From positions 62,001 to 126,000 of IMG/VR virus record IMGVR_UViG_3300021962_000021: a stretch of 64,000 nucleotides of DNA; one strand, 5' to 3'. The position numbers were made by a program, and so were the translations under genes. A model generated the notes under the pieces. That model made no database searches and was not told where the DNA came from. It saw only the letters and a program-made list of their open reading frames with translations. Shown in pieces: positions 2,336-62,623 of the stretch. The first letter of the stretch is position 1. Each line of letters begins with the position of its first letter.

Positions 2336-2338
2336 CAA

Positions 2339-2423: not shown

Positions 2424-2430
2424 GCAAATT

Positions 2431-2503: not shown

Positions 2504-2509
2504 CAAAAA

Positions 2510-2583
2510 GGATTGGTAGTTCAGTTGGTTAGAATGCTGCCCTGTCACGGCAGAGGTCGCGGGTTCGAATCCCGTCCAATCCG
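2510..2583 (+). tRNA. tRNA-Asp(GTC)
   Basis: CTGCC-CTGTCAC-GGCAG, canonical arms. Confidence 0.93.
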
Positions 2584-2587
2584 CAAT

Positions 2588-2661
2588 GGTTCGGTAGCTC
2601 AGTTGGATAGAGCAACAGCCTTCTAAGCTGTGGGTCAAAGGTTCGAATCCTTTCCGAATCA
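2588..2661 (+). tRNA. tRNA-Arg(TCT)
   Basis: ACAGC-CTTCTAA-GCTGT. Confidence 0.93.
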
Positions 2662-2667
2662 CAAACT

Positions 2668-2754
2668 GCCCTGGTGGCGAAATTGGTAGACGCGCAAGAC
2701 TTAAAATCTTGTTCACCGTAAATGTGAGTGCCGGTTCGATTCCGGCCTGGGGCA
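2668..2754 (+). tRNA. tRNA-Leu(TAA)
   Basis: CAAGA-CTTAAAA-TCTTG, long variable arm. Confidence 0.92.
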
Positions 2755-2756
2755 CA

Positions 2757-2860
2757 ATGTAACGATTCGTAAGAATGGCTGGACGGACGCTATGTATGAA
2801 GAAAACGTAACACTACGATAAAGGTAGTGAAAAGACAGTTTAACAGCACAGCCGTTACAT
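2757..2860 (+). ncRNA. putative multi-stem ncRNA between tRNAs
   Basis: Closing stem ATGTAACG/CGTTACAT; inner stems GGCTG/CAGCC, ATTC/GAAT, CACTAC/GTAGTG. Confidence 0.5.
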
Positions 2861-2863
2861 AAT

Positions 2864-2937
2864 GGGGGGTTAGCTCAGTTGGCTAGAGCACCTGCTTTGC
2901 ACGCAGGGGGTCATCGGTTCGACTCCGATATCCTCCA
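2864..2937 (+). tRNA. tRNA-Ala(TGC)
   Basis: G3:U70 pair, CCTGC-TTTGCAC-GCAGG. Confidence 0.93.
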
Positions 2938-2942
2938 CATAT

Positions 2943-3052
2943 GCCGGAGTGGCGGAAAGAATGTGGCCACATTTGAGACGTCCCGTAATTCTAGAAAGGT
3001 GCAGTATTAGCCGAAATGGCCTGCGTGTGAGTAACCAATCTCTCCTCCGGCA
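2943..3052 (+). ncRNA. aberrant tRNA-Leu-like RNA
   Basis: Acceptor GCCGGAG/CTCCGGC-A, TGGCGGAA...AGACG D arm with an inserted hairpin, degenerate anticodon and T arms. Confidence 0.55.
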
Positions 3053-3061
3053 CCTTTATTT

Positions 3062-3135
3062 GGACCTATAGCTCAGTTGGTTAGAGCAGGGCACTCATAA
3101 TGCCAAGGTCACAGGTTCGAGTCCTGTTTGGTCCA
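3062..3135 (+). tRNA. tRNA-Ile2/Met(CAT), probably lysidine-type Ile2
   Basis: GGACCTATAGCTCAGTTGGTTAGAGC, loop CTCATAA, A73. Confidence 0.85.
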
Positions 3136-3140
3136 CACTT

Positions 3141-3213
3141 GCGGAAGTAGCTCATTCGGTAGAGCACAACCTTGCCAAGGTTGGGGTGGCCAGTTCGAGC
3201 CTGGTCTTCCGCT
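3141..3213 (+). tRNA. tRNA-Gly(GCC)
   Basis: GCGGAAG/CTTCCGC-T, CAACC-TTGCCAA-GGTTG. Confidence 0.93.
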
Positions 3214-3218
3214 CAAAA

Positions 3219-3267
3219 GGACTTAAATGGTTGATGTACACAACTGAAGTAGGTTAGTCCCACCTAC
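3219..3267 (+). ncRNA. putative small pseudoknot RNA
   Basis: GGACT/AGTCC crossed by GTAGGT/ACCTAC; inner hairpin GGTTG/CAACT. Confidence 0.4.
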
Positions 3268-3272
3268 AAATT

Positions 3273-3347
3273 GCGGGAATAGTATAACGGTTATTATGCC
3301 ATCCTTCCAAGTTGGATATGCCGGTTCGATTCCGGCTTCCCGCTCCA
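3273..3347 (+). tRNA. tRNA-Gly(TCC) with encoded CCA
   Basis: GCGGGAA/TTCCCGC-T-CCA, loop CTTCCAA. Confidence 0.9.
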
Positions 3348-3352
3348 CAAAT

Positions 3353-3423
3353 TGCCCTTTGGTGTAACGGTAGCACAATTGGTTTTGGTCCAATTAGTTT
3401 AGGTTCGAATCCTAAAGGGGCAT
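3353..3423 (+). tRNA. tRNA-Gln(TTG)
   Basis: TGCCCTT/AGGGGCA, ATTGG-TTTTGGT-CCAAT. Confidence 0.9.
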
Positions 3424-3441
3424 CATACTAAAATTGGAAAA

Positions 3442-6614: not shown

Positions 6615-6699
6615 GGAGAGATGGCAGAGTGGTTGAATGCACCGGTCTTGAAAACCGGCAACTGTAACAGGTTCTGGGGTTCGAATCCCTGTCTCTCCG
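6615..6699 (+). tRNA. tRNA-Ser(TGA)
   Basis: GGAGAGA/TCTCTCC-G, CCGGT-CTTGAAA-ACCGG, long variable arm. Confidence 0.93.
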
Positions 6700-6704
6700 C
6701 ACAT

Positions 6705-32023: not shown

Positions 32024-32333
32024 AATAATAACACTATCAAATGAGATGATTGATTTGTTAGATGAAGCTCAGTTCTTTGAAGGTAATCCCTTTATTGAAC
32101 GATTACCACTTAAAAGAAAATTGCAAATTGCAATGCAAAGAAAGTGGGAACAAGAATTTGAAATGCATTTGACCGATTTAGAAGTTGAAAAAATAATGCA
32201 AGAAACTCTATCGGATTCGGTTGGTGATACAATTGAAAGTTTAGTGCAAAAAGGTGCATTGAATATGAGTATAGGGTCGGATGGTGAGATAGTTTATTCG
32301 GCAAATAAAGATTTTAACTTTGATGATTTATGA
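32007..32333 (+). CDS. hypothetical protein
   Basis: ORF. Confidence 0.65.
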   Translation: MDILPEIITLSNEMIDLLDEAQFFEGNPFIERLPLKRKLQIAMQRKWEQEFEMHLTDLEVEKIMQETLSDSVGDTIESLVQKGALNMSIGSDGEIVYSANKDFNFDDL

Positions 32334-33529
32334 TAGATAATAAGGAAAACAATTTTGAAAAAGAAATACTTAATAAGTATGCCTGCAATTCTCCATTTAA
32401 ATATATAGATGTTCAACCGCTTGGTAATTTCGTTTGTTGTCCTTTTTGGAATAAAACTAATTTAAGAGTTAATAAAGAAGGTGAACCAAATCCTTGGTTT
32501 GCAGTTGATGAAGATGAAGATTTATTAAGAAATTGGACTTCACCACAAGCCAAAAAAGTTAGAAGGGATATTTTAGATGGTTCATATGAGTCTTGTGATA
32601 AAGTTGTTTGTCCGTGTTTATCTCAAATATTAAGTAAGAGTCAAATTGAAGGTAAAGAGGTTATTCCATATAACTTTCAATTGAAAGAAGAACTGATGAA
32701 AGAATTAAATATCAGCTCGATAGAAGATATTGAAAACTTTGATATTACACCTGAGGAAATACTTTTTGGATTTGATAGAAGTTGTAATTACAAATGCCCA
32801 TCTTGCAGAACACATTTAATACCAAATGATGATGTTGATTCGATAGAATATAAAAGAAAAAAAATCATTATTGATAAAATAGATGAACAATATTCTTGGA
32901 ATTTAAGAAAAATTATAATAACAGGTTCTGGTGACCCGTTTTATTCAAAAATATTTAGAGAATATTTACAAAATTTTGACCCTAAAAAATATCCAAAGTT
33001 AAGAGAAATACAATTGGTTACGAATGGCTCTTTATTAAATAAGCAGATGTGGGATACCATGCCAAATATACATCAATATGTTAAGTGTATCGAAATAAGT
33101 ATAGATGCTGCAACTAAATTAACATATGAAACCAAAGTTAGATTGGGTGGAGTTTGGGAAACGCTTATACAAAATTTACTATTTCTTTCAAAATTAGAAA
33201 GTGTAGAAAGAGTTGTATTTTCTATGACTGTTAGTAAAAATAACTACAAAGAAATGTATATGTTTTGGGAGTTATTAAAACCTTTGTTCGAACATAAAAA
33301 AGTATTGGTTATAAATTATAGAAGATTGGTGCAGTGGGGAACATTTACACCCGAAGAATTAAAAGATTTATGTGTATTTGAAAAAGACCATCCATTGTTT
33401 TCCGATTTTATGAAAGAGTTAAAAAGAATACATCAACTACCACATGTTGATAATAATTTTAATGATTTGATTATTGAGGATGAAAAAGAAAAAACAAAAC
33501 CATTTAAAATACAAAAAAGTTTAATTTAA
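32330..33529 (+). CDS. radical SAM protein with N-terminal SPASM/twitch-like Cys cluster
   Basis: CNYKCPSC (CxxxCxxC), TGSGDPF, TNG, SIDA; N-terminal C..PF...CC...C..CP; ends QKSLI. Confidence 0.88.
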   Translation: MIDNKENNFEKEILNKYACNSPFKYIDVQPLGNFVCCPFWNKTNLRVNKEGEPNPWFAVDEDEDLLRNWTSPQAKKVRRDILDGSYESCDKVVCPCLSQILSKSQIEGKEVIPYNFQLKEELMKELNISSIEDIENFDITPEEILFGFDRSCNYKCPSCRTHLIPNDDVDSIEYKRKKIIIDKIDEQYSWNLRKIIITGSGDPFYSKIFREYLQNFDPKKYPKLREIQLVTNGSLLNKQMWDTMPNIHQYVKCIEISIDAATKLTYETKVRLGGVWETLIQNLLFLSKLESVERVVFSMTVSKNNYKEMYMFWELLKPLFEHKKVLVINYRRLVQWGTFTPEELKDLCVFEKDHPLFSDFMKELKRIHQLPHVDNNFNDLIIEDEKEKTKPFKIQKSLI

Positions 33530-33530
33530 A

Positions 33531-34937
33531 ATGAAAGTATTATTTGGATATGATATTATGACTTACAATGGTGAAATGCCAAATTGTCTGCATCCAAAAT
33601 TTTTGAATACAATATATCAAGCTTCCGATTTTAATTATGCATTCTCAGGAGAGCATTTTCAAAATAGATGGAATATCGGTTGGCATTTATATAATTCCAA
33701 TTTTTGGAATAACTATGTTGATAAAAAATCAGTATATGAAATTATAAATAATCACAAAAACACAAAATGGTTTTATCCGGTAGAACCGTTTGGAAGTATT
33801 GAAAGTTTTTTTGGAAACCATCCTACCTTTAATGAATTATGTTTAAAACAAATTTCATCAGTAGCATTGAATGAAATCAAAAGTGGTAATGGTAATTTAT
33901 TAATTAACTATATCATTGATGGTGGATTAGGAATTACAAAATCGAATTTCAAAAAGTTAGTTGATTTTACAAGAGAAAACGAAATACCCGATGAAAAGGT
34001 TTACCTGATATTTCAGGATTTTAAACTACAATCAAATCTTAAAAAGATGGGTGTTAATTACAATGTATTTGATTTTAATTTAGCACAACTATCTAAATCA
34101 CAGGAGTTTAATAACATAATTAATAATCCTGATTTTAAATTTTGGGGTGATAATTCATTTGAACCACAATTTGGACAAACCGAACATACTGCAAATAGTG
34201 TTTTAACATTTGAAGAATTTGAAAATAGTATAGGAAATCAAAAAAAGGATTTTTTATTTTTATGTAGACATTGGAAGTTGCATAGATTACTTATACTTTC
34301 AAAATTACATAAACTTGGAAAACTATTTTACAATAATACATCTTGGGATAAAAAGTTTTATCACGAAGATGTAATTACTGAATTTTTAAAACATGATGAA
34401 AATTTAGAATTGGCAGAAATAGTTAAAACGGTTTCTAAAAATTTAGATGTATCGGATTTGACTAAAATAGCAGGATATGGTTTTGAAAATAAATCAATAT
34501 ATTTAAATTCTTATATCAGTTTAGTTTCGGAATCTATATTTTTTCAAGTTAGAGATGATGAAGATGTATATGTAGAATTTCCAACAGGATATCTAAGTGA
34601 AAAGATTTGGAAACCAATAGGACACGCACAACCATTCATATTAGCCGGTCCTGCTAAATCTTTACAATACTTACAAAGTTTAGGATATAAAACCTTTCAT
34701 CCATACATTGATGAAAGTTATGATATAGAAACCGATGATTTTAAAAGATTGGAAATGATTTTTGAACAAATAGAAAAGTTTACTAAAAAATCAAAAGAAG
34801 AAAAGGATGAATTTTTACTTAATGTAAAAGATATTGTTAAACACAATCAGCAATTATTTTTAGATTATTCCAAAGAAGCATATAAAGATGATTGTAAAAA
34901 TATAATAAATTCATTAGCAAAACAAACTTTAATATAA
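33531..34937 (+). CDS. glycosyltransferase-like protein (GT10-like C-terminal motif)
   Basis: LVSES...LSEKIWKPI...QPFI...GYKTF...DESYD; ends KQTLI. Confidence 0.55.
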   Translation: MKVLFGYDIMTYNGEMPNCLHPKFLNTIYQASDFNYAFSGEHFQNRWNIGWHLYNSNFWNNYVDKKSVYEIINNHKNTKWFYPVEPFGSIESFFGNHPTFNELCLKQISSVALNEIKSGNGNLLINYIIDGGLGITKSNFKKLVDFTRENEIPDEKVYLIFQDFKLQSNLKKMGVNYNVFDFNLAQLSKSQEFNNIINNPDFKFWGDNSFEPQFGQTEHTANSVLTFEEFENSIGNQKKDFLFLCRHWKLHRLLILSKLHKLGKLFYNNTSWDKKFYHEDVITEFLKHDENLELAEIVKTVSKNLDVSDLTKIAGYGFENKSIYLNSYISLVSESIFFQVRDDEDVYVEFPTGYLSEKIWKPIGHAQPFILAGPAKSLQYLQSLGYKTFHPYIDESYDIETDDFKRLEMIFEQIEKFTKKSKEEKDEFLLNVKDIVKHNQQLFLDYSKEAYKDDCKNIINSLAKQTLI

Positions 34938-51336: not shown

Positions 51337-51678
51337 GTGTTAAGTGAAAGAGTATATCAGAAAGCATCAGATGATTTTGGAACGCCAGTTGGTGTAGCAA
51401 AGATATTAGGTTATAAAAAGAAATCAGAACATATTGAAGAAATTTCACAAGAGAACTATAAAGACCTATCAAAACAATTAGATATTAATTGGATTATAGC
51501 AGAAACCGTTTTGGATGGTAATTACAAAGAATTACAAAGAGAGATATATAGATTAAGGAAAACAAACAAAAGATTAAAATCGGAATTAAGTATATATAAA
51601 AGAGCATTCGATATAATAAATGGCAAAGATAATACCAATAACGCAAAATCCACAAAGATACACACAACAAACGAATAG
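51337..51678 (+). CDS. hypothetical coiled-coil protein
   Basis: ORF. Confidence 0.6.
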   Translation: MLSERVYQKASDDFGTPVGVAKILGYKKKSEHIEEISQENYKDLSKQLDINWIIAETVLDGNYKELQREIYRLRKTNKRLKSELSIYKRAFDIINGKDNTNNAKSTKIHTTNE

Positions 51679-52783
51679 TTGGGTAATATCGGCTTCTCCC
51701 AATATCTCGCCAATCACTATTGAAAAAGGAATTTCTATCGGAAACCTTAAACCCGTATTAGAAGTGGATGGTATTATAGTGAAAGCAGATGATTGGTATT
51801 TGTGTTCGCAAAAGACAATAGATGCTTTACAAACTTCTAACAATCCACACTACGCAATAGAATCTAACGGTCCTATCAAAGTGAAAGATAAAGAGGTTTT
51901 GATGGGTAAGAGTATTAAGATAATAGAGATAGATGTAGATAAGTTAAAGAAAGAAGCAGAAGGGTTAGATTTCCAAAACCGTAAAGCTGCCGTTTCTTAT
52001 GTAGATTATATATTTGAAGGTGATACGCAGGACGGTGTTCCGGTAAACCTCATTCGACAAATCAATTATACACTTAACCCTACTATTGATAGACCCGTAG
52101 ATAAGTATGGATTACATTCCTTTCAGTTAGGGGATGATGATACTATATACTCTATTGATAAATTAAATACAGAAACAAAACAGTCCGATGGGACATTAGA
52201 TAAGAGTAAATTAGAAAACTTTCTTCAAAACTTACAAAATAGGCTTATCATACTCCGTAGTGATTTTAATATGATTAAGGATGTATTCTATAATGGAACA
52301 TTCCCTGATTCTCAAGTTACTATTGATTTCGAAAAGGTCGCAACTACTGGTCTAAGTGATACTGCTAAAGAAGAACCACCGGTAGTATTCAAGTATACTC
52401 AACTTGCTCAAGTGGTAGAAACACCACTTACTTCTACTTCCTCCGGGTCTGCGGATAATACAACCAATAATACCACTACTACCGAGCCTACACCATTACA
52501 ACCTGGTCAACCGGCTACAAACCCAACTCCACCAATCATCCAATTAAAGATGAGAAAGAAAAGAGATTTGCGTTCTAATACTATACCGGTGTGGAGAAAT
52601 GACCCGACCGTTGGTGATAAGGGTGGGAGAAAAAGGTTAATCAAAGAAGGTGATACATTTTGGGGATACTTCTTTAAAGATTGGGAACATGGGCAAAAGG
52701 TATGGGTTGTATATGAATCGGATAAAACTACCATTGTTGGATGGGGTGTTGCTGATAGAAACGATTTTGTCGATCCTGTATAA
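51620..52783 (+). CDS. hypothetical protein with T/P-rich linker and small C-terminal beta domain (possibly virion)
   Basis: 387-aa ORF. Confidence 0.7.
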   Translation: MAKIIPITQNPQRYTQQTNSWVISASPNISPITIEKGISIGNLKPVLEVDGIIVKADDWYLCSQKTIDALQTSNNPHYAIESNGPIKVKDKEVLMGKSIKIIEIDVDKLKKEAEGLDFQNRKAAVSYVDYIFEGDTQDGVPVNLIRQINYTLNPTIDRPVDKYGLHSFQLGDDDTIYSIDKLNTETKQSDGTLDKSKLENFLQNLQNRLIILRSDFNMIKDVFYNGTFPDSQVTIDFEKVATTGLSDTAKEEPPVVFKYTQLAQVVETPLTSTSSGSADNTTNNTTTTEPTPLQPGQPATNPTPPIIQLKMRKKRDLRSNTIPVWRNDPTVGDKGGRKRLIKEGDTFWGYFFKDWEHGQKVWVVYESDKTTIVGWGVADRNDFVDPV

Positions 52784-53206: not shown

Positions 53207-53785
53207 ATGGTTATAGATGTATATAACGGAAAATGGGGAGTTCCCGCGAAATGTGGTTCTCGATATTTTTCTAAAACCGTATTATTACTTAATTCACACA
53301 TTAATATAAATTATAGAGTTCCGTTTGAAAAATTAAACAAACTGGGATTAGAAGTGATTATAATACGAAATCCACTTTCACATTTAGAATCTGCTTTACA
53401 AACGGAAGTGATGGAGTGTTGGGATGATTCGGATAAAATTCTAAAGATATTATTAAAATTTTCCGATATACAATTTGGTGGAACACACTATCATCCACAT
53501 TTTTGTGAAAAAATATATTATATTTGGTATAATAGTGAATTGAGAATAGTGGATTTATCCAATCTTTCCGGATTTATGGAAGAAATATTGAAAACCATAC
53601 CATACAATCAAAATGAATACGATTTTCATACTGAACCAAATTATAAATCAAAAAAAGAAGTTTGGGATAAGTGCGTTGATTTATATCCTGAATTGATGGA
53701 TAAATTGATTAGATATACCCAAAGTGATATGAAGTATTATAATGCTTTATTGAATAAGGATAAGAGTTTAATTAAAATAATATAG
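53207..53785 (+). CDS. sulfotransferase-like protein (degenerate)
   Basis: PAKCGSR (5'PSB-like), IRNPLSHLESA (3'PB-like); ends KSLIKII. Confidence 0.55.
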   Translation: MVIDVYNGKWGVPAKCGSRYFSKTVLLLNSHININYRVPFEKLNKLGLEVIIIRNPLSHLESALQTEVMECWDDSDKILKILLKFSDIQFGGTHYHPHFCEKIYYIWYNSELRIVDLSNLSGFMEEILKTIPYNQNEYDFHTEPNYKSKKEVWDKCVDLYPELMDKLIRYTQSDMKYYNALLNKDKSLIKII

Positions 53786-53849
53786 GGTCTATCAATAGAG
53801 ATACCAAAAATTTTCTTTTAAAAAACGACCTCCCCCAACCCCCACCCCT

Positions 53850-53881
53850 TTTGGTAAATTCAAAAATTATTCGTATATTTG
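53850..53881 (+). promoter_or_regulatory. Bacteroidetes-type promoter of the tailoring-enzyme operon
   Basis: TTTG-N20-TATATTTG. Confidence 0.7.
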
Positions 53882-53897
53882 TTCATAAAACTAAACT

Positions 53898-54461
53898 ATG
53901 ATATTAGAAGATAAAGGTATATCGGTAATTCCAAAGTTTCTATCAAATGAAGAATGTGAATGGATTATAGATAAATGTCTTTCTGATTTGGATTTAAAAG
54001 ATGCGGAAGTATACAATACATATAAAAAAGAAAGTCAGAAAAAGACAAGAAAATCAAAAGTTGCATTTGTGGGTGATTTAAATAACATCAATACAAAAAT
54101 TACAAATGAAATATTAAAAAGAACACCGAAACAAAGAGGTTATGAATTATATGTTGAAAGTTTTCAATTTACAGAATATAATGTAGGCGATTACTTTGAT
54201 TGGCATTCTGATTCAAATGATAATATCTTTAAAGATAGAATATATACAGTTGTGATACAATTAAATGATGAGTATACTTCTGGTGATTTTCAATTAATGT
54301 TAGAAAATTCTATAACATTAAAACCAGGAAAAGGTAATATGTTTATATTTCCATCGGCAATATTACATAGAGTAAAACCCGTAGAATCAGGAAAAAGATA
54401 TTCATTAGTTAGTTGGTTGAAATTAAAAAAAATAGAAAATAATAAAACAGAATTGATATAA
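53898..54461 (+). CDS. 2OG-Fe(II) oxygenase (prolyl-4-hydroxylase-like)
   Basis: DWHSD, LHRVKPV, RYSLV; ends KTELI. Confidence 0.88.
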   Translation: MILEDKGISVIPKFLSNEECEWIIDKCLSDLDLKDAEVYNTYKKESQKKTRKSKVAFVGDLNNINTKITNEILKRTPKQRGYELYVESFQFTEYNVGDYFDWHSDSNDNIFKDRIYTVVIQLNDEYTSGDFQLMLENSITLKPGKGNMFIFPSAILHRVKPVESGKRYSLVSWLKLKKIENNKTELI

Positions 54462-55114
54462 TGGAATTTACAAAATATAATTTCGGGCCCGAATTAATGA
54501 AAACCAATATTGATTTGGATTTATGTAAAGAACTTCTATCCGTTGGGAGAAATGAAATTTTAATAGATAATAAGCTCGATTCCATAACATTTGATACATC
54601 TTACAAATATAGTTTTGAAAATGTAAGTTATTTTAAAAATAAAATTTCCGTTTATATAGAAAATTATATAAAAGAAATTGCCAAAATTAGAAATTTAAAG
54701 CCATTTCGATTTGGAATTAATATTGAAGATTTATGGATTAATTTTCAAAAAAGTAGAGATTTTAATTCTCCACATTTTCATGCATATGATATATCCTTTG
54801 TAATATATGTGGATATGCCGGATGAAATTAAAAATGAAAAAACTATTAAAAGAGGATTTCAAAATGGAAGTATATCATTTTTATATGGACAAAATGTAAA
54901 AAAATTTGATTCAAATGCACAAGAATTTTCAAATACGGTAAATAGTTATATGTCACCGATAACACAGATAAATCATTCACCGATTACAGGGGAAATGTTT
55001 ATATTTCCAGCGTATTTAATGCATTATGTTAGTCCATTTTTTACAAAAGATGTAGAACGGATATCAGTTGCGGGTAATGTCAGTTTAATAGATAATAAAA
55101 AAAGTATAATATAA
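54461..55114 (+). CDS. putative 2OG-Fe(II) oxygenase (TIGR02466-like)
   Basis: WIN, PHFH, FPAYLMHYV, RISVAGN; ends KKSII. Confidence 0.8.
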   Translation: MEFTKYNFGPELMKTNIDLDLCKELLSVGRNEILIDNKLDSITFDTSYKYSFENVSYFKNKISVYIENYIKEIAKIRNLKPFRFGINIEDLWINFQKSRDFNSPHFHAYDISFVIYVDMPDEIKNEKTIKRGFQNGSISFLYGQNVKKFDSNAQEFSNTVNSYMSPITQINHSPITGEMFIFPAYLMHYVSPFFTKDVERISVAGNVSLIDNKKSII

Positions 55115-55401
55115 TGAGTTTTAATCCTAAAGAAATTATTAATGCTTGGATTACATCATTCAACCCTAATTCAACACAAAAGAGTTTAGCAGAAGAACGT
55201 ATGAGCATTTGTATGAAGTGTGAGTTTAGAAAAGAAATTATACACAATAAAAAATGGTCTGCAATATGTGGTGGATGTGGATGTCCTTTAGAAAAGAAAA
55301 TATTTACAGACCAGGCCGGAACATGTCCAAAATCAAAGTGGAATAGTGTTGAAGAAAAATATATAAAAACTCTAAAAGTTAAAACTAAAACAATTATTTA
55401 A
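55114..55401 (+). CDS. small Cys-rich protein (DUF6171-like)
   Basis: RMSICMKC, CGGCGCP, CPKSKW; ends KTKTII. Confidence 0.7.
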   Translation: MSFNPKEIINAWITSFNPNSTQKSLAEERMSICMKCEFRKEIIHNKKWSAICGGCGCPLEKKIFTDQAGTCPKSKWNSVEEKYIKTLKVKTKTII

Positions 55402-55403
55402 TT

Positions 55404-56045
55404 ATGAAAAAAATTACGTTTGAAGATGGTGTAGATTTGTATATAGTAAAATTAGAAAATACAAAGTTACAATCTGATGTTTTAGGAAATTGTATATCAT
55501 TTTTATCTACCGCCAATTATGTTCCCCAAGATAATTATCCATATTTAAACGATTGGGGTAGTTTTGATTTTAAAAAAGAAATGATACCATCGAATTATAT
55601 TGAAGAAATTATTAAAATTTGTTTGAATGAATGTGTTGAGTTAGGTATAAAAGATGAACTGAATTTTAATAAAGTTAATATTAATGCTTGGATAAATGTT
55701 GTAAAAACTGGAAAACCAAAACAAAATAATTTTAAATATGGTGGTGATGTTAAATTACATAACCACATAGATTTGCAAAAAATTATAAATTCTTTTTATC
55801 CGGAATATACTTTTGTATATTATGCCCAAATGCCAAATAATCTATCAGATACGGAAGGCACTTTAATAGTAGAAGGTAAAAACAAAAAAAGATATTATTA
55901 TTTACCAGAAGAAGGTGAAGTGGTTATTATGAAATCTAATTTAGAACATTCACCAAATAATTCACCCAATTCAACAAAAAATAGAATTGTTATAGCGGGT
56001 AATGTAGGATTTGAATCTGCGAAAAAAATTAGTAGTTTAATTTAA
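55404..56045 (+). CDS. putative 2OG-Fe(II) oxygenase
   Basis: AWINV, LHNH, LEHSP, RIVIAGN; ends KISSLI. Confidence 0.7.
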   Translation: MKKITFEDGVDLYIVKLENTKLQSDVLGNCISFLSTANYVPQDNYPYLNDWGSFDFKKEMIPSNYIEEIIKICLNECVELGIKDELNFNKVNINAWINVVKTGKPKQNNFKYGGDVKLHNHIDLQKIINSFYPEYTFVYYAQMPNNLSDTEGTLIVEGKNKKRYYYLPEEGEVVIMKSNLEHSPNNSPNSTKNRIVIAGNVGFESAKKISSLI

Positions 56046-56082
56046 AAAACCAATATATTTATATAAATAAGACAATAAAAAA

Positions 56083-57618
56083 ATGAAAGCATTAATAATT
56101 GGAACGGATTTTTTAAAGGATGCATCCGGTAATTTAAGAATAATAGAAACAAACACAAATGTGGATGTTCATAACAAAATTGTTCCACAATTGGATTGGA
56201 ATACATTTAAGCAATTTTTAATAGATAATTCTATTACAAAATTGCATTTTATATATACGGATGGTAATTTTATAAATACGGAAAAAGAAAATGTATTTGA
56301 TACAACAACAGAAAATATATCTTTAAAAGATAAAATGAGTGAAATAATGGTTGAATTATCAGGCACATTCAACCACTATGAAGTTCCTAAAAATTCAATA
56401 ACAGTTCCATATATAGAAGATGCGGATGATGTATTAATACTGAGAACATCATATGATACTACTGCATTAGTAGATGAAAATTATGCAAAAGATAAGGTAA
56501 ATTTTCATAGAGTAATTTCAAATGAAACATTTGCACCAAACGTGTATTATCATTCAGAAACTGATACAAATCTTAATATAGACCAATTAGTAAATTTACA
56601 TACTACAGCCGGCGATGCACCGAATTATATTGTAAAAACAAGATATCCAAATACAAATTATTTAACTTATCCAAAGTTTTACAAAATACAATCATTGGAA
56701 TCTTTACAATCTTTAAAAGATTCATTAACAGAATTGGAATATATAGAAGAATACCACACACACCCGGATAATTTTATTGATAATAAAATAGGCGTAATAA
56801 GAAGTTTGGATATAATATATGGTGGAACATTAAGTATATTACATTTGGGTTCGTATATTATGACGGCCGGTGTTGAAAATGATGCGTGGGTAACCGAATA
56901 TGATACAAATGGTAAAATGGAACAAAATTCCAGAGTATTATGGATGAGTAAATCCCTAATAAGTAAATTTGGTACAACTTATATTTTGGATGATGATACA
57001 CCAATATTATATTCAGATGGAAGTTTTAAATATCCAAATCAAATTTTAGTTAATGATTCATTAAAAACGATAACTCTTCCTTGGGTTCCACTAAATGAAA
57101 CATCCGAAACAGGAGAAGTATTATATATGCCAGATTTGAATTCAGGAAGTTTCAGCTCTGACTTAGAATCATTTACTCAATCAAATACAACCGTAATTGA
57201 TTTAGGAACACAAACTAAAGAATCCCTAATGATTAGGGTAACATTGGAAAATGGTATAGTTTATGAAGATTTGCCGGCTAGTTCTATGTTGGTAGAGGAA
57301 TACGATACATTACAAACTACATTTGTATTTACAAATAGATTTAGAATAAATGATTCAATTGTATTTTTTGATTATGTGAATAATACTTTAGTAAAATCAA
57401 AAATAACAAATTTGGAAATCGTATATGTTAATAAAAAAATATATGATATAAATGTTGAAACAAATGATTTGTTTTTACCATTAGCAGATGAAACATTGGG
57501 ACTTACTTTTGTACAACACAACGGTACATGTTATGGTTGGTGTGGTGCTTGGATGTGTGCAGTTTGGTGTTGTAGTGCATGTGGTTTCTGTGGTGGCCAA
57601 CCTCCTTCAAAACTTTAA
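56083..57618 (+). CDS. circularly permuted ATP-grasp / Hint domain / Cys-Trp-rich tail fusion protein
   Basis: N-terminal GTDFLKD..G..IIETNTN then YIVK, YIEEY; Hint blocks ILDDDTPILYSDGSFK..I.VND, IYDINV, QHN; tail GTCYGWCGAWMCAVWCCSACGFCGGQPPSKL. Confidence 0.75.
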   Translation: MKALIIGTDFLKDASGNLRIIETNTNVDVHNKIVPQLDWNTFKQFLIDNSITKLHFIYTDGNFINTEKENVFDTTTENISLKDKMSEIMVELSGTFNHYEVPKNSITVPYIEDADDVLILRTSYDTTALVDENYAKDKVNFHRVISNETFAPNVYYHSETDTNLNIDQLVNLHTTAGDAPNYIVKTRYPNTNYLTYPKFYKIQSLESLQSLKDSLTELEYIEEYHTHPDNFIDNKIGVIRSLDIIYGGTLSILHLGSYIMTAGVENDAWVTEYDTNGKMEQNSRVLWMSKSLISKFGTTYILDDDTPILYSDGSFKYPNQILVNDSLKTITLPWVPLNETSETGEVLYMPDLNSGSFSSDLESFTQSNTTVIDLGTQTKESLMIRVTLENGIVYEDLPASSMLVEEYDTLQTTFVFTNRFRINDSIVFFDYVNNTLVKSKITNLEIVYVNKKIYDINVETNDLFLPLADETLGLTFVQHNGTCYGWCGAWMCAVWCCSACGFCGGQPPSKL

Positions 57619-57630
57619 AAATAATTAAAA

Positions 57631-57750
57631 ATGAAAGATAAAATAATTTCTTCGGAAATAGTATTAACCAATAACACCACAAATCAGGCCATTGCAACTA
57701 TTATGCAGCAGGTCGCAAACTTAATTTATACGGATGTAACTGGTTCATAA
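57631..57750 (+). CDS. 39-aa peptide downstream of the Hint fusion (not in ORF track)
   Basis: MKDKIISSEIVLTNNTTNQAIATIMQQVANLIYTDVTGS, fills the gap. Confidence 0.6.
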   Translation: MKDKIISSEIVLTNNTTNQAIATIMQQVANLIYTDVTGS

Positions 57751-57761
57751 ATTTTATTAAA

Positions 57762-58496
57762 ATGGTTATAAATAATTGTATTGTTTTTATACCAATACCA
57801 AAAAATGCATCTTGGTCGGTAGAAGATACTTGTATTGAATACGGGTTGGATTTAACATATCCGAATATTTTATGGGAAAATTCTATTAAATTTGGAGTAA
57901 AAAATCCAGAAAAACATATTCATTCGGATATAAATTATTTAATTGATTCGCTTGGTATGGATTTTGAATTTGTATGTATAATAAGAAATTCTACGGATAG
58001 ATTTATATCAGCTTGGAAATTTTTTATACAAGAAATAATTCAAAGTATATCCGAAGAGGGTTCAAATATCCTTAAAAATTTAGATAATAATTTTATAATT
58101 TCTTTTTTTAAAGACAACATATACGAATTCAAAAATGCGTATATATCTTATGAAACTAGAGTAAATCTCCTAATAAAATTATTAGAAACGGCGGGTGTAA
58201 TTCAATATTATAATATATCCGATGAATTTAAAAAAAGATACGCAATACACATTATGTCATTCGTATCGCAATATCAATGGATATCATCATCAAAAGTAAA
58301 AGTAAAAGAATTTCATTTTGATAGATTATATGAATTTGAAGATTATATATCAAAAAAACTTAATATAGATTTTAAGTTAATTCATAAAAATAAAACGCAA
58401 TTAGATTATTCTGCAATATTGAAAACCGATGAATTAATAAAATTTGTCGATACATATATTGATGGTTCATACAAAAGAGTTAAATCTATTATTTAA
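57762..58496 (+). CDS. sulfotransferase family 2-like protein
   Basis: FIPIPKNASWS, IRNSTDRFISAW, SQYQW; ends VKSII. Confidence 0.75.
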   Translation: MVINNCIVFIPIPKNASWSVEDTCIEYGLDLTYPNILWENSIKFGVKNPEKHIHSDINYLIDSLGMDFEFVCIIRNSTDRFISAWKFFIQEIIQSISEEGSNILKNLDNNFIISFFKDNIYEFKNAYISYETRVNLLIKLLETAGVIQYYNISDEFKKRYAIHIMSFVSQYQWISSSKVKVKEFHFDRLYEFEDYISKKLNIDFKLIHKNKTQLDYSAILKTDELIKFVDTYIDGSYKRVKSII

Positions 58497-59317
58497 TGAA
58501 ATTATTTACATTCGGTGATAGTTGGACCGAAGGAGTTGGTTCCGATTGGCAGGAAGAATTAAAAACCGAAGATTTAGAAGAAAGAACAAAAATACGTCAT
58601 AAATACGCATGGCCTACATTGTTATCAAAACATTTAAATATTCCTTTTGATAATTTTGGAATAGGTGGTTGTTCTAATAAAAGTATATTTGATGCAGTTT
58701 GTAATTCAGTAGATACCGATTTAATTAAAAAAGATGATTTGGTTGTTATAATGTGGAGTTCATCTTTAAGAGATTCTGTTCCATTTTTTCCTGATAATAA
58801 TTCCTGGCACTATTGGGGTGAGAGATATAAACGAAAAGAATATTTGTATAAAAAAGTATTTAAAAATACAAATATAACTACAAAATACGATAGAATAAAA
58901 AAAGAATATCAAGAATATTTTTTAGCAAATTTATTTACGGATGAATATTATCAAATCGTAAACCAAAATTATATTTTATATTTACAATGGATGTTTAAAA
59001 AAATTGGTATAAGATATATTTTTTGTGATGCATTTGATTTAATGATAAAAGATGATATTTCAAAAAACATAGATAAAACTAATCTAATTGATAAAAACCA
59101 TTATTGGGGTATTTCAAATAAAACTTTAAAAGATTTATTAATAAATACAAATAGAAAGGATGTGTGGGGAGATGGACAACATTGGAAAGATTTAACAGAG
59201 GGTAAACATCCTAACAAAAATGGATATAAATTAATTGCGAATGAACTATATGATTTTATATTAAATAAAAACATATTAACATATAAGACGAACAATATCG
59301 AAAATATTATTATATGA
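58496..59317 (+). CDS. SGNH/GDSL hydrolase-fold protein
   Basis: FGDSWTEG, NFGIGGCSN, HPNKNGY; ends ENIII. Confidence 0.8.
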   Translation: MKLFTFGDSWTEGVGSDWQEELKTEDLEERTKIRHKYAWPTLLSKHLNIPFDNFGIGGCSNKSIFDAVCNSVDTDLIKKDDLVVIMWSSSLRDSVPFFPDNNSWHYWGERYKRKEYLYKKVFKNTNITTKYDRIKKEYQEYFLANLFTDEYYQIVNQNYILYLQWMFKKIGIRYIFCDAFDLMIKDDISKNIDKTNLIDKNHYWGISNKTLKDLLINTNRKDVWGDGQHWKDLTEGKHPNKNGYKLIANELYDFILNKNILTYKTNNIENIII

Positions 59318-59859
59318 ATTATTATATAAACAATTTGTTTGATAAAAAAGAATGCCAATCTATAATAGAATTTGCAGAAAATAATGGCATACAATTTTCA
59401 TATAATCCAAATGAAGTATGGGATTGTAAAAGAATTTATGATGATGAATTTAAATCAAATATAATTCAAAAAATCAAAGAAAAATATAATAAAAATGAAT
59501 TTAAATTATGGTTTGATTTGAATAAATTTAATATAAAGGATGTAAATATTAGTTTGACAAAGTATTATGATAATAGATGGTTGGATTTGCATTTAGATAC
59601 TACATCACAATTTACAACAGTTATAGTTTTATCGGCCGGATTTAGTGATGGTAGCTTCGTATTATCCGAAAAAATGGATGATATAAAAAATGGAAATAAA
59701 TACATACTAAATATTGGTGAATCTATTTCATTTGATGGTAGTAAAACATATCACGGTGTAATGCCAGTCTATTCAGGTATTAGATATGCATTAAATATAT
59801 GGATGACAAATACAGATTTTAAATATTATCAATTAGATAAATCAAAAAAATTGATATGA
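59314..59859 (+). CDS. 2OG-Fe(II) oxygenase
   Basis: LHLD, YHGVMPV, RYALNIW; ends SKKLI. Confidence 0.8.
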   Translation: MNYYINNLFDKKECQSIIEFAENNGIQFSYNPNEVWDCKRIYDDEFKSNIIQKIKEKYNKNEFKLWFDLNKFNIKDVNISLTKYYDNRWLDLHLDTTSQFTTVIVLSAGFSDGSFVLSEKMDDIKNGNKYILNIGESISFDGSKTYHGVMPVYSGIRYALNIWMTNTDFKYYQLDKSKKLI

Positions 59860-60380
59860 ATATTTTAATAATTTCCTTACCAAGAACAGGTTCCACCGAA
59901 TTAGGTAAAAAATTAGCAATTGATAATAAATTGGTTTATAATTTTGAACCATTTAATCCATTTAATAAAATAAATACTCAAAATAATATTCATAATGTAG
60001 TTATAAAAACAATTATATTTCATAAACCAAATTCTATAAAAGAATCCAATAGAGTAGACTGGTTAATAAGTTTGATATCAAAATTTGAAAAAACAATTTT
60101 ATTAAGTAGAAGAGATTTAAAGGCATGTGCGGAAAGTTGGTCTTATCTAAACTATAAAATGAAAACATCGAATTTTTCATCTATATCACAATATCTTTGG
60201 GAAAAAACACCAAACTATGATGAAGCATTTTATAACATAAAGTTGTGGAATGATGAATTAAACTATATATCGCAAAAAACAAATATACCAATAACTTATT
60301 ATGAAGATATCTATGATTTAAATGATAAAAATAGATTGAGAAAAGGAAATAAAGATGATTATAATTACAATTTAATATAA
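59856..60380 (+). CDS. sulfotransferase-like P-loop protein
   Basis: SLPRTGST, EPF, RRD....ES, YYEDI; ends NYNLI. Confidence 0.7.
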   Translation: MNILIISLPRTGSTELGKKLAIDNKLVYNFEPFNPFNKINTQNNIHNVVIKTIIFHKPNSIKESNRVDWLISLISKFEKTILLSRRDLKACAESWSYLNYKMKTSNFSSISQYLWEKTPNYDEAFYNIKLWNDELNYISQKTNIPITYYEDIYDLNDKNRLRKGNKDDYNYNLI

Positions 60381-61444
60381 TGATTGATTTAAAAGATTAT
60401 ATATGCAAAGTTCCATTTGAAATATTGGAAATACATGATGAATCTTATTTTTTATGCTGTGCAAGTTGGTTAAAAAAACACTTACCAAAGAATCAACCTA
60501 TGAAAGATGTGTGGAATAGTGATGAGGCAAAGGATATTAGAAAATCGGTATTGAATGGTTCATATCTTTATTGTGATAAAAAACAATGTCCGTATCTATC
60601 TCAATTAATAAATTTAAAAACCAATAATTTAGGTCCTATAAAACATTATTCTCAAATAGACCCATCTTTTTTTAATAATTACAATTTTGAAACAGGAAAA
60701 ATGTATCAGGGACCAAAAACCATACATATGAGTTTTGATAGGACGTGTAATTATAAATGCCCATCTTGTAGAATAGAAATGATTGTTGCAAATAGTGATA
60801 AAATACAAAAAATAAATATAACAATAGAAGAAATGGAATCTCTATATGCAAACGATATAGAAATGATATATTGTTCAGGCACTGCAGACCCGTTTGCTTC
60901 CGTTTCATATAGAAATTTTTTAAGAAAATTTAATCCTAAAAAATATCCAAATTTAAAATCAATACACTTACATACAAATGCCAGTTTATGGAATAAGGAA
61001 ATGTGGGATAGTATGCCGGAAATACATGATTATGTAAAGAGTTGTGAAATAAGTATTGATGCTGGTTCAAAATTTACATACGAAAATGTAACAAGATTGG
61101 GTGGTAATTGGGATAATTTAATATCCAATCTTAATTTTATTTCAACCATAAAAAGTATACAAACTGTAAAATGTTCATTTGTAGTTCAACAATCTAATTA
61201 TACAGAAATGTCTGAATTTTTAAGATTAATTACTTTCATATTTGGTAATAAAACAAAAGTATTTTTTGGAAGAATAACTAATTGGGGAACATTTTCCGAT
61301 GAAACCTTTAAAATGATTGATGTGGGTAATGTGCTACATCCAGAACATTCTTTGTTTTTAGATGAGTTCAAAAAGGTAGCCACCAATCCATATGTATTTC
61401 ATAATATGTATGATTTAATAGAAATAAAAAAATCTATAATTTAA
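60380..61444 (+). CDS. radical SAM protein with N-terminal SPASM/twitch-like cluster (paralog of 32330..33529)
   Basis: CNYKCPSC, SGTADPF, SIDAG; ends KKSII. Confidence 0.88.
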   Translation: MIDLKDYICKVPFEILEIHDESYFLCCASWLKKHLPKNQPMKDVWNSDEAKDIRKSVLNGSYLYCDKKQCPYLSQLINLKTNNLGPIKHYSQIDPSFFNNYNFETGKMYQGPKTIHMSFDRTCNYKCPSCRIEMIVANSDKIQKINITIEEMESLYANDIEMIYCSGTADPFASVSYRNFLRKFNPKKYPNLKSIHLHTNASLWNKEMWDSMPEIHDYVKSCEISIDAGSKFTYENVTRLGGNWDNLISNLNFISTIKSIQTVKCSFVVQQSNYTEMSEFLRLITFIFGNKTKVFFGRITNWGTFSDETFKMIDVGNVLHPEHSLFLDEFKKVATNPYVFHNMYDLIEIKKSII

Positions 61445-62150: not shown

Positions 62151-62227
62151 TGACATTATTTCCTAAAAAAAGTTTGGTATGATAGTTGAATAATAATAGT
62201 ATATTGTTTAACAAAAAAATTAAAACT

Positions 62228-62623
62228 ATGTATTACACAAATTTTGACAAAGTATTAGAATCTATTTTTGAAAGTAACTCTCCAGTTTGGGAAAACAAAT
62301 CAACAACATTTGTTCCTTCTAAATTTGCAGTTGATGTAAAAGATGATAAAGCACACATTGCTTTAGCAGTGATAGGACATGACCCTAAAAACATTGAAAT
62401 CAATTGTTATGAAGATAAAATTGAAGTTACTGCAACAAAAGAGAAAAAAGATTCACAAAACGCAGTTGACCAGTTGATTGGAAACATTAAAGAAACAATC
62501 ACATTGGGTAAAGACTTAGATGGTAGAAATGCAAAAGCGGAAATTAAAAATGGTATCTTATCAATCTTAGTAGAAAGAAAAGAAGAATCCAAACCAAAAA
62601 AATTAACCTTAAAAGTTGGTTAA
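62228..62623 (+). CDS. small heat shock protein (Hsp20/alpha-crystallin)
   Basis: AEIKNGILSILV...KPKKL. Confidence 0.85.
   Translation: MYYTNFDKVLESIFESNSPVWENKSTTFVPSKFAVDVKDDKAHIALAVIGHDPKNIEINCYEDKIEVTATKEKKDSQNAVDQLIGNIKETITLGKDLDGRNAKAEIKNGILSILVERKEESKPKKLTLKVG

Follow-up and report, generated by a model that had tools for sequence, protein, structure and literature searches.

Circularly permuted ATP-grasp enzymes serve in glutathione and polyamine-conjugate metabolism, and eukaryotic glutathione synthetase is reportedly the classic textbook case, said to go back to Polekhina et al. 1999. The permuted families CP_ATPgrasp_1 and CP_ATPgrasp_2 belong to bacteria, where alpha-E and transglutaminase-like partners accompany their genes, and they are not known as phage Hint fusions. 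Hint domains are found in inteins, Hedgehog proteins and polymorphic toxins, where the layout places the Hint domain just before a variable C-terminal cargo. In borosins the modifying enzyme, a methyltransferase, carries its own substrate peptide at the C-terminus, and an external protease takes the place that a Hint domain might have. Graspetides are peptides into which ATP-grasp ligases introduce cross-links (PMC8939145); the ligases concerned are of the classical, non-permuted, RimK-like type and work on Asp/Glu side chains of separate precursors. The nearest structural relatives of the ligase domain described below activate a peptide C-terminal carboxylate and then add an amine: YgiC and YjfC ligate peptides to spermidine, and Cp1B makes amide bonds (PMC12568646).

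We analyzed a 64,000-nucleotide stretch (the window) of IMG/VR virus record IMGVR_UViG_3300021962_000021, which encodes a 511-aa protein with a predicted permuted ATP-grasp domain followed by a Hint-fold domain and a Cys-rich tail. This protein could be a self-sufficient device that makes a peptide or attaches one. A permuted ATP-grasp-Hint fusion is not described in the literature searched, in Pfam or in PHROGs.

The gene and its family

Positions 56083-57615 (+) translate as one open 511-aa frame, for which the standard genetic code suffices and no alternative code is needed, and 56083 is the earliest possible start downstream of an in-frame stop. The full-length AlphaFold model (pLDDT 87.5, pTM 0.82) has a low-confidence linker, residues 293-298, separating the ligase domain from the Hint domain, and low pLDDT in the tail. 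The end coordinate of the original prediction, 56979 (residue 299), falls at this linker.

A word search recovered 161 full-length homologs, and every full-length homolog has in common a start at residue 1 that reads M-K-x-x-I-x-G-[TS]-D. An N-domain profile search gave 786 clusters; the family also counts 366 representatives at 50% identity and is present on 313 IMG/VR contigs. The whole protein has no match in Pfam or PHROGs, lenient thresholds included, and the Pfam scan returned nothing even at E 10. The family is absent from the GenBank phage collection by tblastn and megablast, and nothing in BFVD, a library of viral structures derived from UniProt, matched it at E<=1e-3. It is thus far confined to uncultured T4-like phages; a cyanophage origin was rejected, as the complete genome has no psbA. 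A T4-type late promoter, TATAAATA, lies at 56062-56069, 13 nt 5' of the gene start, and was rejected as a conserved feature, being present upstream of only 5 of 77 homologs.

Table 1. Features of the gene and its neighbors, in window coordinates (all residue numbers refer to the 511-aa protein unless stated).
Feature	Position	Strand	Basis or remark
Whole gene, 511 aa	56083..57618	+	Permuted ATP-grasp, then Hint domain, then Cys-rich tail
Circularly permuted ATP-grasp domain (predicted), residues 1-292	56083..56958	+	AlphaFold pLDDT 93.7, structure searches
N-terminal beta-hairpin, residues 2-24, with predicted Mg-binding D9/E22/N24; the permuted element	56086..56154	+	Strands 2-12 and 18-24 in both models
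Rossmann-like "pre-ATP-grasp" part, residues ~50-160	56230..56562	+	Classical ATP-grasps align from there
Central (lid) unit, strand-loop-strand-helix-strand, residues 182-224	56626..56754	+	DSSP
Two long strands, residues 235-261, in one sheet with the N-terminal hairpin	56785..56865	+	DSSP, conservation
Hint-fold domain, residues 299-480	56977..57522	+	Foldseek on PDB with the full model; terminal H479-N480 at 57517-57522
Cys/Gly/Pro/Trp-rich hypervariable tail, 31 aa, residues 481-511, ending K-L	57523..57615	+	Homolog comparison
39-aa ORF, predicted small subunit of the ligase	57631..57750	+	Synteny, complex model; 12 nt downstream of the gene
192-aa ORF, upstream	in 53207..56045	+	Synteny; end [ILV][ILV]
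2OG-Fe(II) oxygenases	53898-54461, 54461-55114, 55404-56045	+	Pfam; ends [ILV][ILV]
95-aa Cys-rich DUF6171-like protein	55114-55401	+	Pfam; end [ILV][ILV]
244-aa ORF, downstream	in 57762..61444	+	No significant Pfam match; ortholog weakly sulfotransferase; end [ILV][ILV]
GDSL/DUF6071 protein	58496-59317	+	Pfam; end [ILV][ILV]
181-aa 2OG-family protein	in 57762..61444	+	Pfam; end [ILV][ILV]
174-aa protein, weak sulfotransferase match	in 57762..61444	+	Pfam; end [ILV][ILV]
354-aa radical-SAM-like protein, CxxxCxxC	60380-61444	+	CNYKCPSC at its residue 123; end [ILV][ILV]

Fold of the ligase domain and its predicted small subunit

The original prediction had placed a metal-binding-like motif, normally C-terminal, ahead of two other ATP-grasp motifs, and this order holds: GTDFLKDASGNLRIIETNTN occupies residues 7-26 (56101-56160) at the extreme N-terminus, PNYIVKTRYP follows at residues 180-189 (56620-56649), and YIEEY comes last of the three at residues 220-224 (56740-56754). 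In an alignment of 71 homologs with identity down to 30%, G7, D9, E22, N24, P180, N181, K185 and R240 are invariant and E223 is kept in 68, so that the resemblance of these motifs is more than chance. The D-to-E spacing of 13 and the E-x-N are the same as in E. coli YgiC (D102, E115, N117), and the spacing is nearly that of GspS (D318, E330, N332), as read from the K-12 genes. By analogy with classical ATP-grasp topology, K185, on strand 182-186, would be the ATP-phosphate lysine, and E222/E223, on strand 219-223, the acidic hinge. The loop after the Lys strand reads TRYPNTNYLTYP and has no Gly, where a Gly-rich phosphate loop was looked for; such a loop is not present in all ATP-grasps. Other invariant columns fall in the Rossmann-like part (T107, P109, D113, R121, D125, D131 and Y134), the lid unit consists of DSSP elements E182-186, E198-200, H205-214 and E219-223, and in the long strands D243 accompanies the invariant R240 in 70 of 71 homologs.

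A three-part ATP-grasp fold is predicted, with a Rossmann-like part, a lid unit and an antiparallel nucleotide-holding sheet. Three structure searches were performed: Foldseek on PDB, the Foldseek-independent VIA-align, and an ESM-Atlas shape search. Permuted ATP-grasps ranked first in all three, namely YgiC, glutathionylspermidine synthetase, eukaryotic glutathione synthetase and CP_ATPgrasp. The top 24 Foldseek matches of the ligase model in PDB were all permuted, the best being 1m0w (E 2.7e-5), 8fbz and 5oeu, from eukaryotic glutathione synthetase and nematode GSS-like effectors. Permuted enzymes cover model residues 1-292 and classical ATP-grasps only 50-292, with RimK, LysX, GshB and TTLL each aligning their own residue 1 with model residue ~50. 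The claimed circular permutation therefore stands: the hairpin that comes last in the classical fold, with the predicted Mg ligands, has moved to the front of the chain, the Rossmann-like part, Lys strand and hinge follow it, the two long strands close the domain, and the structure searches agree. An ATP-grasp fold is predicted for residues 1-292, within the first 300 residues where the original prediction called for one. According to the models, residues 1-292 very probably form a circularly permuted ATP-grasp fold, with a permutation whose placement in the glutathione synthetase / glutathionylspermidine synthetase / YgiC structural class is supported. The domain is quite likely to be catalytically active as an ATP-grasp carboxylate ligase.

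Comparison with CP_ATPgrasp and GSP_synth profiles, the check proposed with the original prediction, detected nothing significant: there was no significant match to GSP_synth (PF03738) or CP_ATPgrasp_1/2 (PF04174, PF14403), and a search of the phage genome with PF03738 at E 1 found nothing, although it did detect the E. coli control. The hhalign probability of the N-domain alignment was 1.3% against 25 GSP_synth sequences from 21 genomes and 0.6% against YgiC alone, for which the related loci are only enterobacterial copies, 87-100% identical and too similar to yield a useful profile. In the hhalign alignment model 5-249 runs colinear with YgiC 97-359, with the D/E-x-N motifs paired and the N-terminal hairpin on the YgiC motif (residues 101-119), and such colinear alignments are by themselves no evidence of homology. 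Against PDB sequences the N-domain profile found nothing, and the full-length profile only non-significant Hint and nanobody matches. Because no sequence profile detects it (Pfam, PHROGs, PDB, hhalign), the ligase domain is, as judged by sequence, a new family and not a member of CP_ATPgrasp or GSP_synth.

In 76 of 78 loci the gene is followed, after 1-37 nt, by an ORF of 37-52 aa, and these small ORFs are homologous across subfamilies and found in distant architectures too. The complex model of the ligase with the 39-aa protein gave an ipSAE of 0.82 (runs 0.81-0.83), against 0.01 for the best of three controls, with partner pLDDT 87-89 and contact agreement of at least 93%; of 80 solved complexes, 58 reach the mark set for the complex tool, as do 2 out of 110 mismatched pairs. 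The modeled partner contacts long-strand residues (235-261) and the N-terminal hairpin. We predict that the 39-aa protein binds the ligase domain as a structural subunit, contributing one strand and one helix on the back face of the hairpin/long-strand sheet.

The Hint domain, the tail and the neighboring genes

Foldseek with the full model matched 69 PDB entries at E<=1e-3, the listed ones being Hint or intein domains, among them hedgehog Hint 1at0 (E 4.8e-8, TM by target 0.77), BIL2 6y75 (E 1.1e-7) and a RecA mini-intein. The hhalign comparison with the canonical second Hint of two relatives (P0092 and P0106) was out of register and aligned the wrong half, and the Hint catalytic positions were therefore read from motifs and the fold search. 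The position-1 Cys/Ser/Thr nucleophile is absent, with Y300 or I301 in its place, as is the block-B Thr-x-x-His, where N/D stands at +3 from T387 instead of His. Lacking both, the domain is unable to perform the first steps of protein splicing. H479 and N480 are invariant in the 71 homologs, and of 176 homologs with a complete N-terminus 171 carry the terminal His-Asn; on a Hint fold, this invariant pair suggests that the domain probably cleaves, and the cleavage site would be N480/G481. The Cys/Ser/Thr required at +1 for true splicing is missing: the residue is G481 here and across homologs S (40), G (33), P (29), A (21) or others. The first Cys after His-Asn is at +2 in 109 homologs and at +3 in 49, and Cys at +1 occurs only in tandem-Hint relatives. 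Among the best 150 of 366 representatives, all those long enough keep the fusion of the ligase, from residue 1, to the Hint domain, whatever comes after.

The tail of the 511-aa protein has seven Cys and no Asp or Glu. Across 150 tail-only homologs, tails are 26-36 aa long with mostly 6 or 8 Cys, K/R occurs within the last four residues in every case, and 41 tails have no Asp or Glu. Outside the Cys positions tail identity is 41% where ligase domain identity is 84%; the tail is hypervariable on a fixed Cys frame. In some variants the Cys-rich block is flanked by a second, putatively self-cleaving module. This is either a canonical Hint starting CF.GD (Intein_splicing 1e-12) or a sub-threshold Peptidase_S74, whose S-D-x-x-x-K motif comes directly behind the Cys block and follows a Lys, so that an S74-type cut would expose the same kind of Lys-ended C-terminus. 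Variants of ~565-590 aa have S74-like C-termini, and so do some that are longer still (up to 668 aa). In three divergent members Peptidase_S74 (PF13884) is the only Pfam family match, and it stays below threshold there, with E 0.005-0.2 and 12-17 bits where the cut-off is 22; it concerns the longer variants and not the 511-aa protein.

Synteny was compared over 78 loci, of which 70 have the 95-aa protein, mostly at position -1, and 75 have the 2OG family; other loci add APS kinase, halogenase, SET and carbamoyltransferase, and one related locus has a tail-fibre-like S74 protein downstream. The surrounding modifying enzymes share a C-terminal [STK]-[LI]-[IL] tag. Ends of the form [ILV][ILV] occur at positions -5 to +5 in 64-93% of the 78 loci, compared with about 22% of genes at least 8 positions away and 6% of the genome's other ORFs, and on the main gene in none of the 78. 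The tag holds without gene overlap and with varied codons, and shows no co-variation with ligase subfamily. The tail as sole substrate of the neighboring enzymes is weakened as an idea by members with a 7-aa Lys/Pro tail that keep the same neighborhood, and a link between Trp halogenase and the Trp-rich tail is not obligatory, the halogenase being in 49 of 78 loci and absent from the phage's own genome.

Possible reactions and comparison with known systems

The best explanation we can offer, at about an even chance, is that the permuted ligase acts on its own tethered tail and the Hint domain then releases the peptide. The ligase would turn a carboxylate into an acyl-phosphate with ATP, and this would be joined at the tethered tail, at its C-terminal carboxylate or at a tail Lys or Cys. 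The terminal His-Asn would then cut the bond after itself by Asn cyclisation, and the tail would be freed as a hypervariable peptide of roughly 31 aa. The part after the Hint domain always offers nucleophiles and a free carboxylate, with Lys near the C-terminus and here also seven Cys. That the tail is the substrate of the ligase is a tentative assignment; that the released tail could be ligated or cyclised in cis, or attached to another protein, as originally proposed, is reasonable.

The ligase might instead work in trans on a small molecule or short peptide from the neighboring enzymes, with the Hint domain and tail serving separately, for example in timed release of a cargo peptide; we consider this rather doubtful. 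The gene lies within a conserved block that encodes 2OG oxygenases together with sulfotransferase-like, GDSL and radical-SAM-like enzymes, and a similar cyanophage cluster has been taken as a secondary-metabolite or polysaccharide-decoration pathway (PMC7824862). Members without a Cys-rich tail retain the neighborhood, and all close structural relatives (YgiC, GspS, glutathione synthetase, Cp1B) are small-substrate ligases. However, among the full-length representatives listed no ligase is without a Hint domain, across very divergent architectures, which argues for a coupled function. In addition, the structurally aligned permuted ligases have 40-145 residues ahead of the hairpin that the phage domain is without, and these residues are assumed to help bind substrate there. 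A coupled function of another kind would be an ATP-driven half of splicing, in which the ATP-grasp replaces the first steps: the ligase would activate the neighbors' tagged C-terminus, a tail Cys or Lys would attack, and Asn cyclisation would free an enzyme-peptide conjugate. Of the residues needed for splicing, the Hint domain is missing precisely those of the first steps and retains those of the last ones, [ILV][ILV] ends are enriched around the gene, GS/GspS-type ligases bind peptide C-terminal carboxylates, and distant relatives have Cys directly after His-Asn. Even so, we judge such a reaction quite unlikely, as the first Cys at +3 here is poor geometry for an S-to-N shift, the tag does not vary with the ligase subfamily, one 511-aa protein would be consumed per ligation in a single turnover, and no biological reason is known for placing a Cys-rich peptide on about ten enzymes. 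Similarly, the protein is unlikely to be a single-use ATP-powered ligation device in which the ATP-grasp took over the first half of splicing, a tagged C-terminus or other acyl donor would be captured by tail Cys/Lys, the Hint domain would cut the acylated peptide free, and the 39-aa subunit would complete the ligase fold.

A catalytically dead ATP-grasp serving as a scaffold, either a hub docking the tagged enzymes or a virion/tail-fibre accessory, would fit the lack of a Gly-rich loop and of an Arg next to the Asp, as well as the S74-like C-termini of some variants and the S74 protein downstream in one related locus, the S74 chaperone domain being typical of fibres. It is nevertheless very unlikely: D9, E22, N24 and K185 are invariant and E223 nearly so down to 30% identity, which is hard to explain without nucleotide and metal binding. 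That there is no permutation at all, the N-terminal motif having arisen by chance or the hairpin belonging to another gene through a mis-called start, would suit the failure of sequence searches to detect any ATP-grasp family. We reject this extremely improbable reading on the start position (the first after the in-frame stop, with the upstream gene ending at 56045 in another reading context), on conservation of the N-terminus from residue 1 in hundreds of homologs, and on the different model ranges matched by permuted and classical enzymes.

Taken together, the losses and retentions of the Hint domain, the nucleophile-rich hypervariable tail, the conserved micro-subunit and the shared C-terminal tag suggest that lytic T4-like phages, whose hosts are uncultured, encode a coordinated system for modifying peptides or proteins. 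Should the ligase modify the tail that it carries, the protein would be a compact, genetically encodable route to make and release modified Cys-rich peptides, and also a case of an enzyme taking over half of the splicing reaction. As a single-use ligation device it would give lytic marine phages a new way of producing modified or conjugated peptides. The conservative result alone provides a fold and testable active-site residues for a large family of "hypothetical proteins".

Compared with known permuted ligases, the phage domain has no detectable sequence similarity to YgiC/YjfC or the GspS synthetase domain (GSP_synth). It starts directly at the hairpin, whereas the aligned part begins at residue 94 in YgiC and 310 in GspS; it also differs from these enzymes in lacking the Arg at -2 from the Asp and the Gly-rich loop, in being Hint-fused, and in its predicted need for a separate 39-aa subunit. 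Its top Foldseek matches, eukaryotic glutathione synthetase and the nematode GSS-like effectors, are much larger (450-480 aa), stand-alone, act on small-molecule substrates and have no sequence similarity to it, and there is no Pfam match to CP_ATPgrasp_1 or CP_ATPgrasp_2 (e.g. Mfla_0391, PDB 3n6x). With borosin OphMA and the graspetides the phage protein shares a concept, respectively a RiPP enzyme-core fusion and an ATP-grasp acting on a peptide. It falls outside the graspetide class, as its fold is permuted, its peptide is fused to the enzyme and its tail has no Asp/Glu. BIL domains and the phage protein share the Hint fold and a C-terminal His-Asn with a non-canonical residue behind it, and the phage variants with cargo between two Hint domains recall the BUBL layout. 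Unlike BIL, BUBL and PT-HINT domains, the phage Hint has neither the position-1 nucleophile nor the block-B His, and we know of no BIL, BUBL or PT-HINT protein with an ATP-grasp. The cargo differs as well: in the phage family it is a Cys-rich peptide of 26-36 aa and no folded toxin or ubiquitin-like domain.

Motif order and predicted fold of the N-terminal domain

The 511-aa protein is read from a single open frame, and its start codon is the earliest possible past an in-frame stop, the preceding gene stopping at 56045. The original prediction, that ATP-grasp motifs occur here in circularly permuted order, was borne out: GTDFLKDASGNLRIIETNTN is followed in one frame by PNYIVKTRYP and then YIEEY. 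The same residue-1 motif opens every N-terminally complete homolog among the 161 found by word search, all of them metagenomic and unnamed. Across 71 aligned homologs, the most distant at 30% identity, every sequence has G7, D9, E22, N24, P180, N181, K185 and R240, and 68 have E223. The E. coli K-12 protein YgiC (D102, E115, N117) has the same D-to-E spacing of 13, then E-x-N, and in GspS (K-12; D318, E330, N332) the spacing is one residue shorter than in the phage protein. By these sequences, the N-terminal motif and the permuted order are real and under selection.

Pfam and PHROGs gave no match for the protein, and a profile search of PDB sequences gave none for the ligase domain. The hhalign comparison with 25 GSP_synth sequences returned a probability of only 1.3%, although the alignment was colinear (residues 5-249 versus YgiC 97-359) and paired the Mg motifs. 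The domain is recognised by no sequence method, and structure prediction is decisive instead. AlphaFold, using a 71-sequence alignment, gave pLDDT 93.7 and pTM 0.87 for residues 1-292; for the whole 511-aa protein the values were 87.5 and 0.82. When the domain was searched against the PDB with Foldseek, all 24 matches at E<=1e-3 were permuted ATP-grasps; among them are the glutathione synthetases of yeast and human, GSS-like effectors from nematodes, YjfC, YgiC, GspS and Mfla_0391. Classical ATP-grasps enter only with Ddl, at E 0.027. A wide VIA-align search, which is independent of Foldseek, scored, below its top, T. brucei GS at 8.1, Mfla_0391 at 7.7 and Cp1B at 7.6, with matches covering all or nearly all of the 1-292 model. 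An ESM-Atlas shape search returned the family's own viral clusters first, then CP_ATPgrasp_1/2, 'acid-amine ligase YgiC' (GSP_synth) and GCS2+CP_ATPgrasp clusters (TM 0.55-0.56). These searches on the AlphaFold model agree on the ATP-grasp fold that had been proposed for residues 1-300.

Features of the main protein and its surroundings (window coordinates; residues of the 511-aa protein)
Feature	Window position	Strand	Residues	Remark
Main gene	56083-57618	+	1-511	permuted ATP-grasp, Hint, Cys-rich tail
GTDFLKDASGNLRIIETNTN			7-26	N-terminal motif
PNYIVKTRYP			180-189	motif
YIEEY			220-224	motif
Hairpin			2-24	model
Rossmann-like part			about 50-160	model
Strand with K185, then loop, strand, helix			182-186 (strand)	model
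Hinge strand			219-223	model
Two long strands			235-261	model
TATAAATA	56062-56069	+		13 nt 5' of main start codon
39-aa ORF	57631-57750	+		conserved 3' neighbour of main gene
95-aa protein	55114-55401	+		CxxC...CxxCxC...C motifs; weak DUF6171 match
Radical-SAM-type protein	60380-61444	+		CNYKCPSC at residue 123; Pfam score only weak
Radical-SAM-type protein	32330-33529	+		above Pfam threshold, E 2.7e-7
Radical SAM enzyme and its neighbour	32330-34937			20 kb upstream; both tagged
ORFs scored for C-terminal ending	53207-61444
Run of start/stop overlaps	53898-61444			one or four bases (TAATG, ATGA)
387-aa ORF	51620-52783	+		adjoins cluster upstream
Hsp20/alpha-crystallin protein	62186-62623	+		Pfam E 2.3e-10; directly downstream of cluster
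15-tRNA-gene array and one more tRNA-Ser	1133-3424 and 6615-6700	+

Hint domain, C-termini and extent of the family

Residues from about 300 to 480 of the full model match Hint domains in Foldseek, among them hedgehog 1at0 (E 4.8e-8, TM by target 0.77), BIL2 6y75 and the RecA mini-intein. On motif reading, position 1 holds Y300 or I301 and no Cys, Ser or Thr; block B has Thr387 but Asn/Asp in place of His; the H479-N480 pair at the end does not vary. Without the position-1 nucleophile and the block-B His the domain would be unable to start splicing, and it keeps residues predicted to serve in cutting the bond after Asn480.

The tail of the main protein comprises 31 aa with seven Cys. In 150 tail-only homologs it is 26-36 aa long with mostly 6 or 8 Cys, consists of 22% Cys, 13.5% Gly, 9% Pro and 7% Trp, and always has K/R within its last four residues, the usual ending being K-[LVIF]. 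Identity falls to 41% over the non-Cys tail positions of proteins whose ligase domains share 84%.

An exhaustive profile search gave 366 representatives at 50% identity, and the family occurs on 313 IMG/VR contigs. Residue 1 is the start of the ligase domain in every N-terminally complete member among the best 150 of the 366. C-termini after the first Hint's His-Asn fall into four kinds: a Lys-containing stub of 5-7 aa with no Cys; a Cys-rich peptide; such a peptide with a sub-threshold Peptidase_S74-like domain behind it, in which S-D-x-x-x-K starts directly after a Lys; and canonical Hint domains, one to three in number (His-Asn then CF[IV]AGT...), ending ...LVHN-K. The last kind is seen in the distant homologs P0298, P0299, P0303, P0305 and similar proteins, where a degenerate Hint precedes one to three canonical tandem Hint domains and a single Lys follows the last His-Asn, with no Cys-rich cargo. 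The ligase, the degenerate Hint and a short C-terminus with Lys recur throughout the family; the Cys-rich block and the further self-cleaving modules have been added to this core. Since neither the GenBank phage collection (tblastn) nor BFVD holds a homolog, the family appears so far limited to uncultured phages.

Conserved neighbourhood and predicted small partner

The source genome is a 238-kb IMG/VR record rated complete by CheckV; it encodes a T4 Gp23 capsid protein and lacks psbA. The main gene sits within a block conserved over 78 loci, whose members include 2OG-Fe(II) oxygenases (75/78), the 95-aa Cys-rich DUF6171-like protein, mostly at -1 (70), two weakly sulfotransferase-like families (67 and 66), a further 2OG-like protein (63), GDSL/DUF6071 (50), a Trp-halogenase-like protein absent from this genome (49), APS kinase (27) and a radical-SAM-like protein (21). 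Only the 39-aa ORF and the 2OG family are more constant neighbours than the 95-aa protein, which usually lies immediately upstream; radical SAM/SPASM pairs adjoin the ligase gene in related loci. For a similar cyanophage cluster, a role in secondary metabolism or polysaccharide decoration has been proposed (PMC7824862).

The run of start/stop overlaps suggests that translation is coupled along the cluster; short gaps separate the ligase gene and 39-aa ORF from it. The 387-aa ORF, whose product contains a low-complexity linker rich in Thr, Asn and Pro, matched nothing in Pfam or PHROGs. The octamer TATAAATA, the T4 late-promoter consensus, has only 8 copies on this strand of the window, and just 5 of 77 homologs have it upstream.

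An [ILV][ILV] ending is found on 10 of the 11 ORFs scored around the main gene, itself the sole exception, and on 16 of 255 elsewhere in the genome (6%). Over the 78 loci, positions -5 to +5 carry it in 64-93% of cases, versus about 22% far away. Because the ending, preceded by S/T/K, is retained where genes do not overlap and is written in varied codons, [STK]-[LI]-[IL] looks like a protein-level C-terminal tag (tag loci L002, L110-L192, L194 and L195). Both radical-SAM-type proteins bear it.

A 37-52-aa ORF lies 1-37 nt 3' of the main gene in 76 of 78 loci. These small ORFs are homologous across subfamilies and also adjoin the most divergent architectures; the 39-aa ORF has no Pfam match. 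Co-folding with the 511-aa protein, with a separate alignment for each chain, gave ipSAE 0.82 (three runs, 0.81-0.83); the best of three controls gave 0.01. Of 80 solved complexes 58 reach the tool's mark, as do 2 of 110 mismatched pairs; these rates hold only roughly here because we supplied our own alignments. In the model the partner (pLDDT 87-89, contact agreement at least 93%) pairs residues 9-13 with ligase strand 257-261 and lays its helix against residues 8, 10, 18, 20, 23, 239-243 and 254, on the hairpin-sheet face opposite D9, E22 and N24; it also contacts the Hint domain. The model supports binding to the ligase, and we read the partner as a probable structural subunit, not a substrate.

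Proposed action and comparison with known permuted ligases

The nearest structural relatives activate a peptide C-terminal carboxylate and add an amine (PMC12568646). Peptide ligation or cyclisation had been suggested for the phage domain, and the most economical reading would have the ligase act in cis on its own tail, which the Hint domain would then release. What favours this reading is that the ligase is always fused to a Hint domain that keeps only the release step, and that the tail behind it offers a free carboxylate and Lys/Cys nucleophiles. Three rivals stand beside it: the domain may be a trans-acting metabolite ligase, the tagged neighbours may be ligated to the tail, or the domain may be a dead scaffold. 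Members without Cys-rich tails show that the Cys peptide is not a universal substrate.

Literature searches did not find the family or its architecture described; within two known fold classes, sequence family and architecture are both new. The phage domain begins right at the hairpin, whereas known permuted ligases align from 40-145 or more residues in, and unlike them it has neither the Gly-rich loop nor the Arg at -2 from the Asp.
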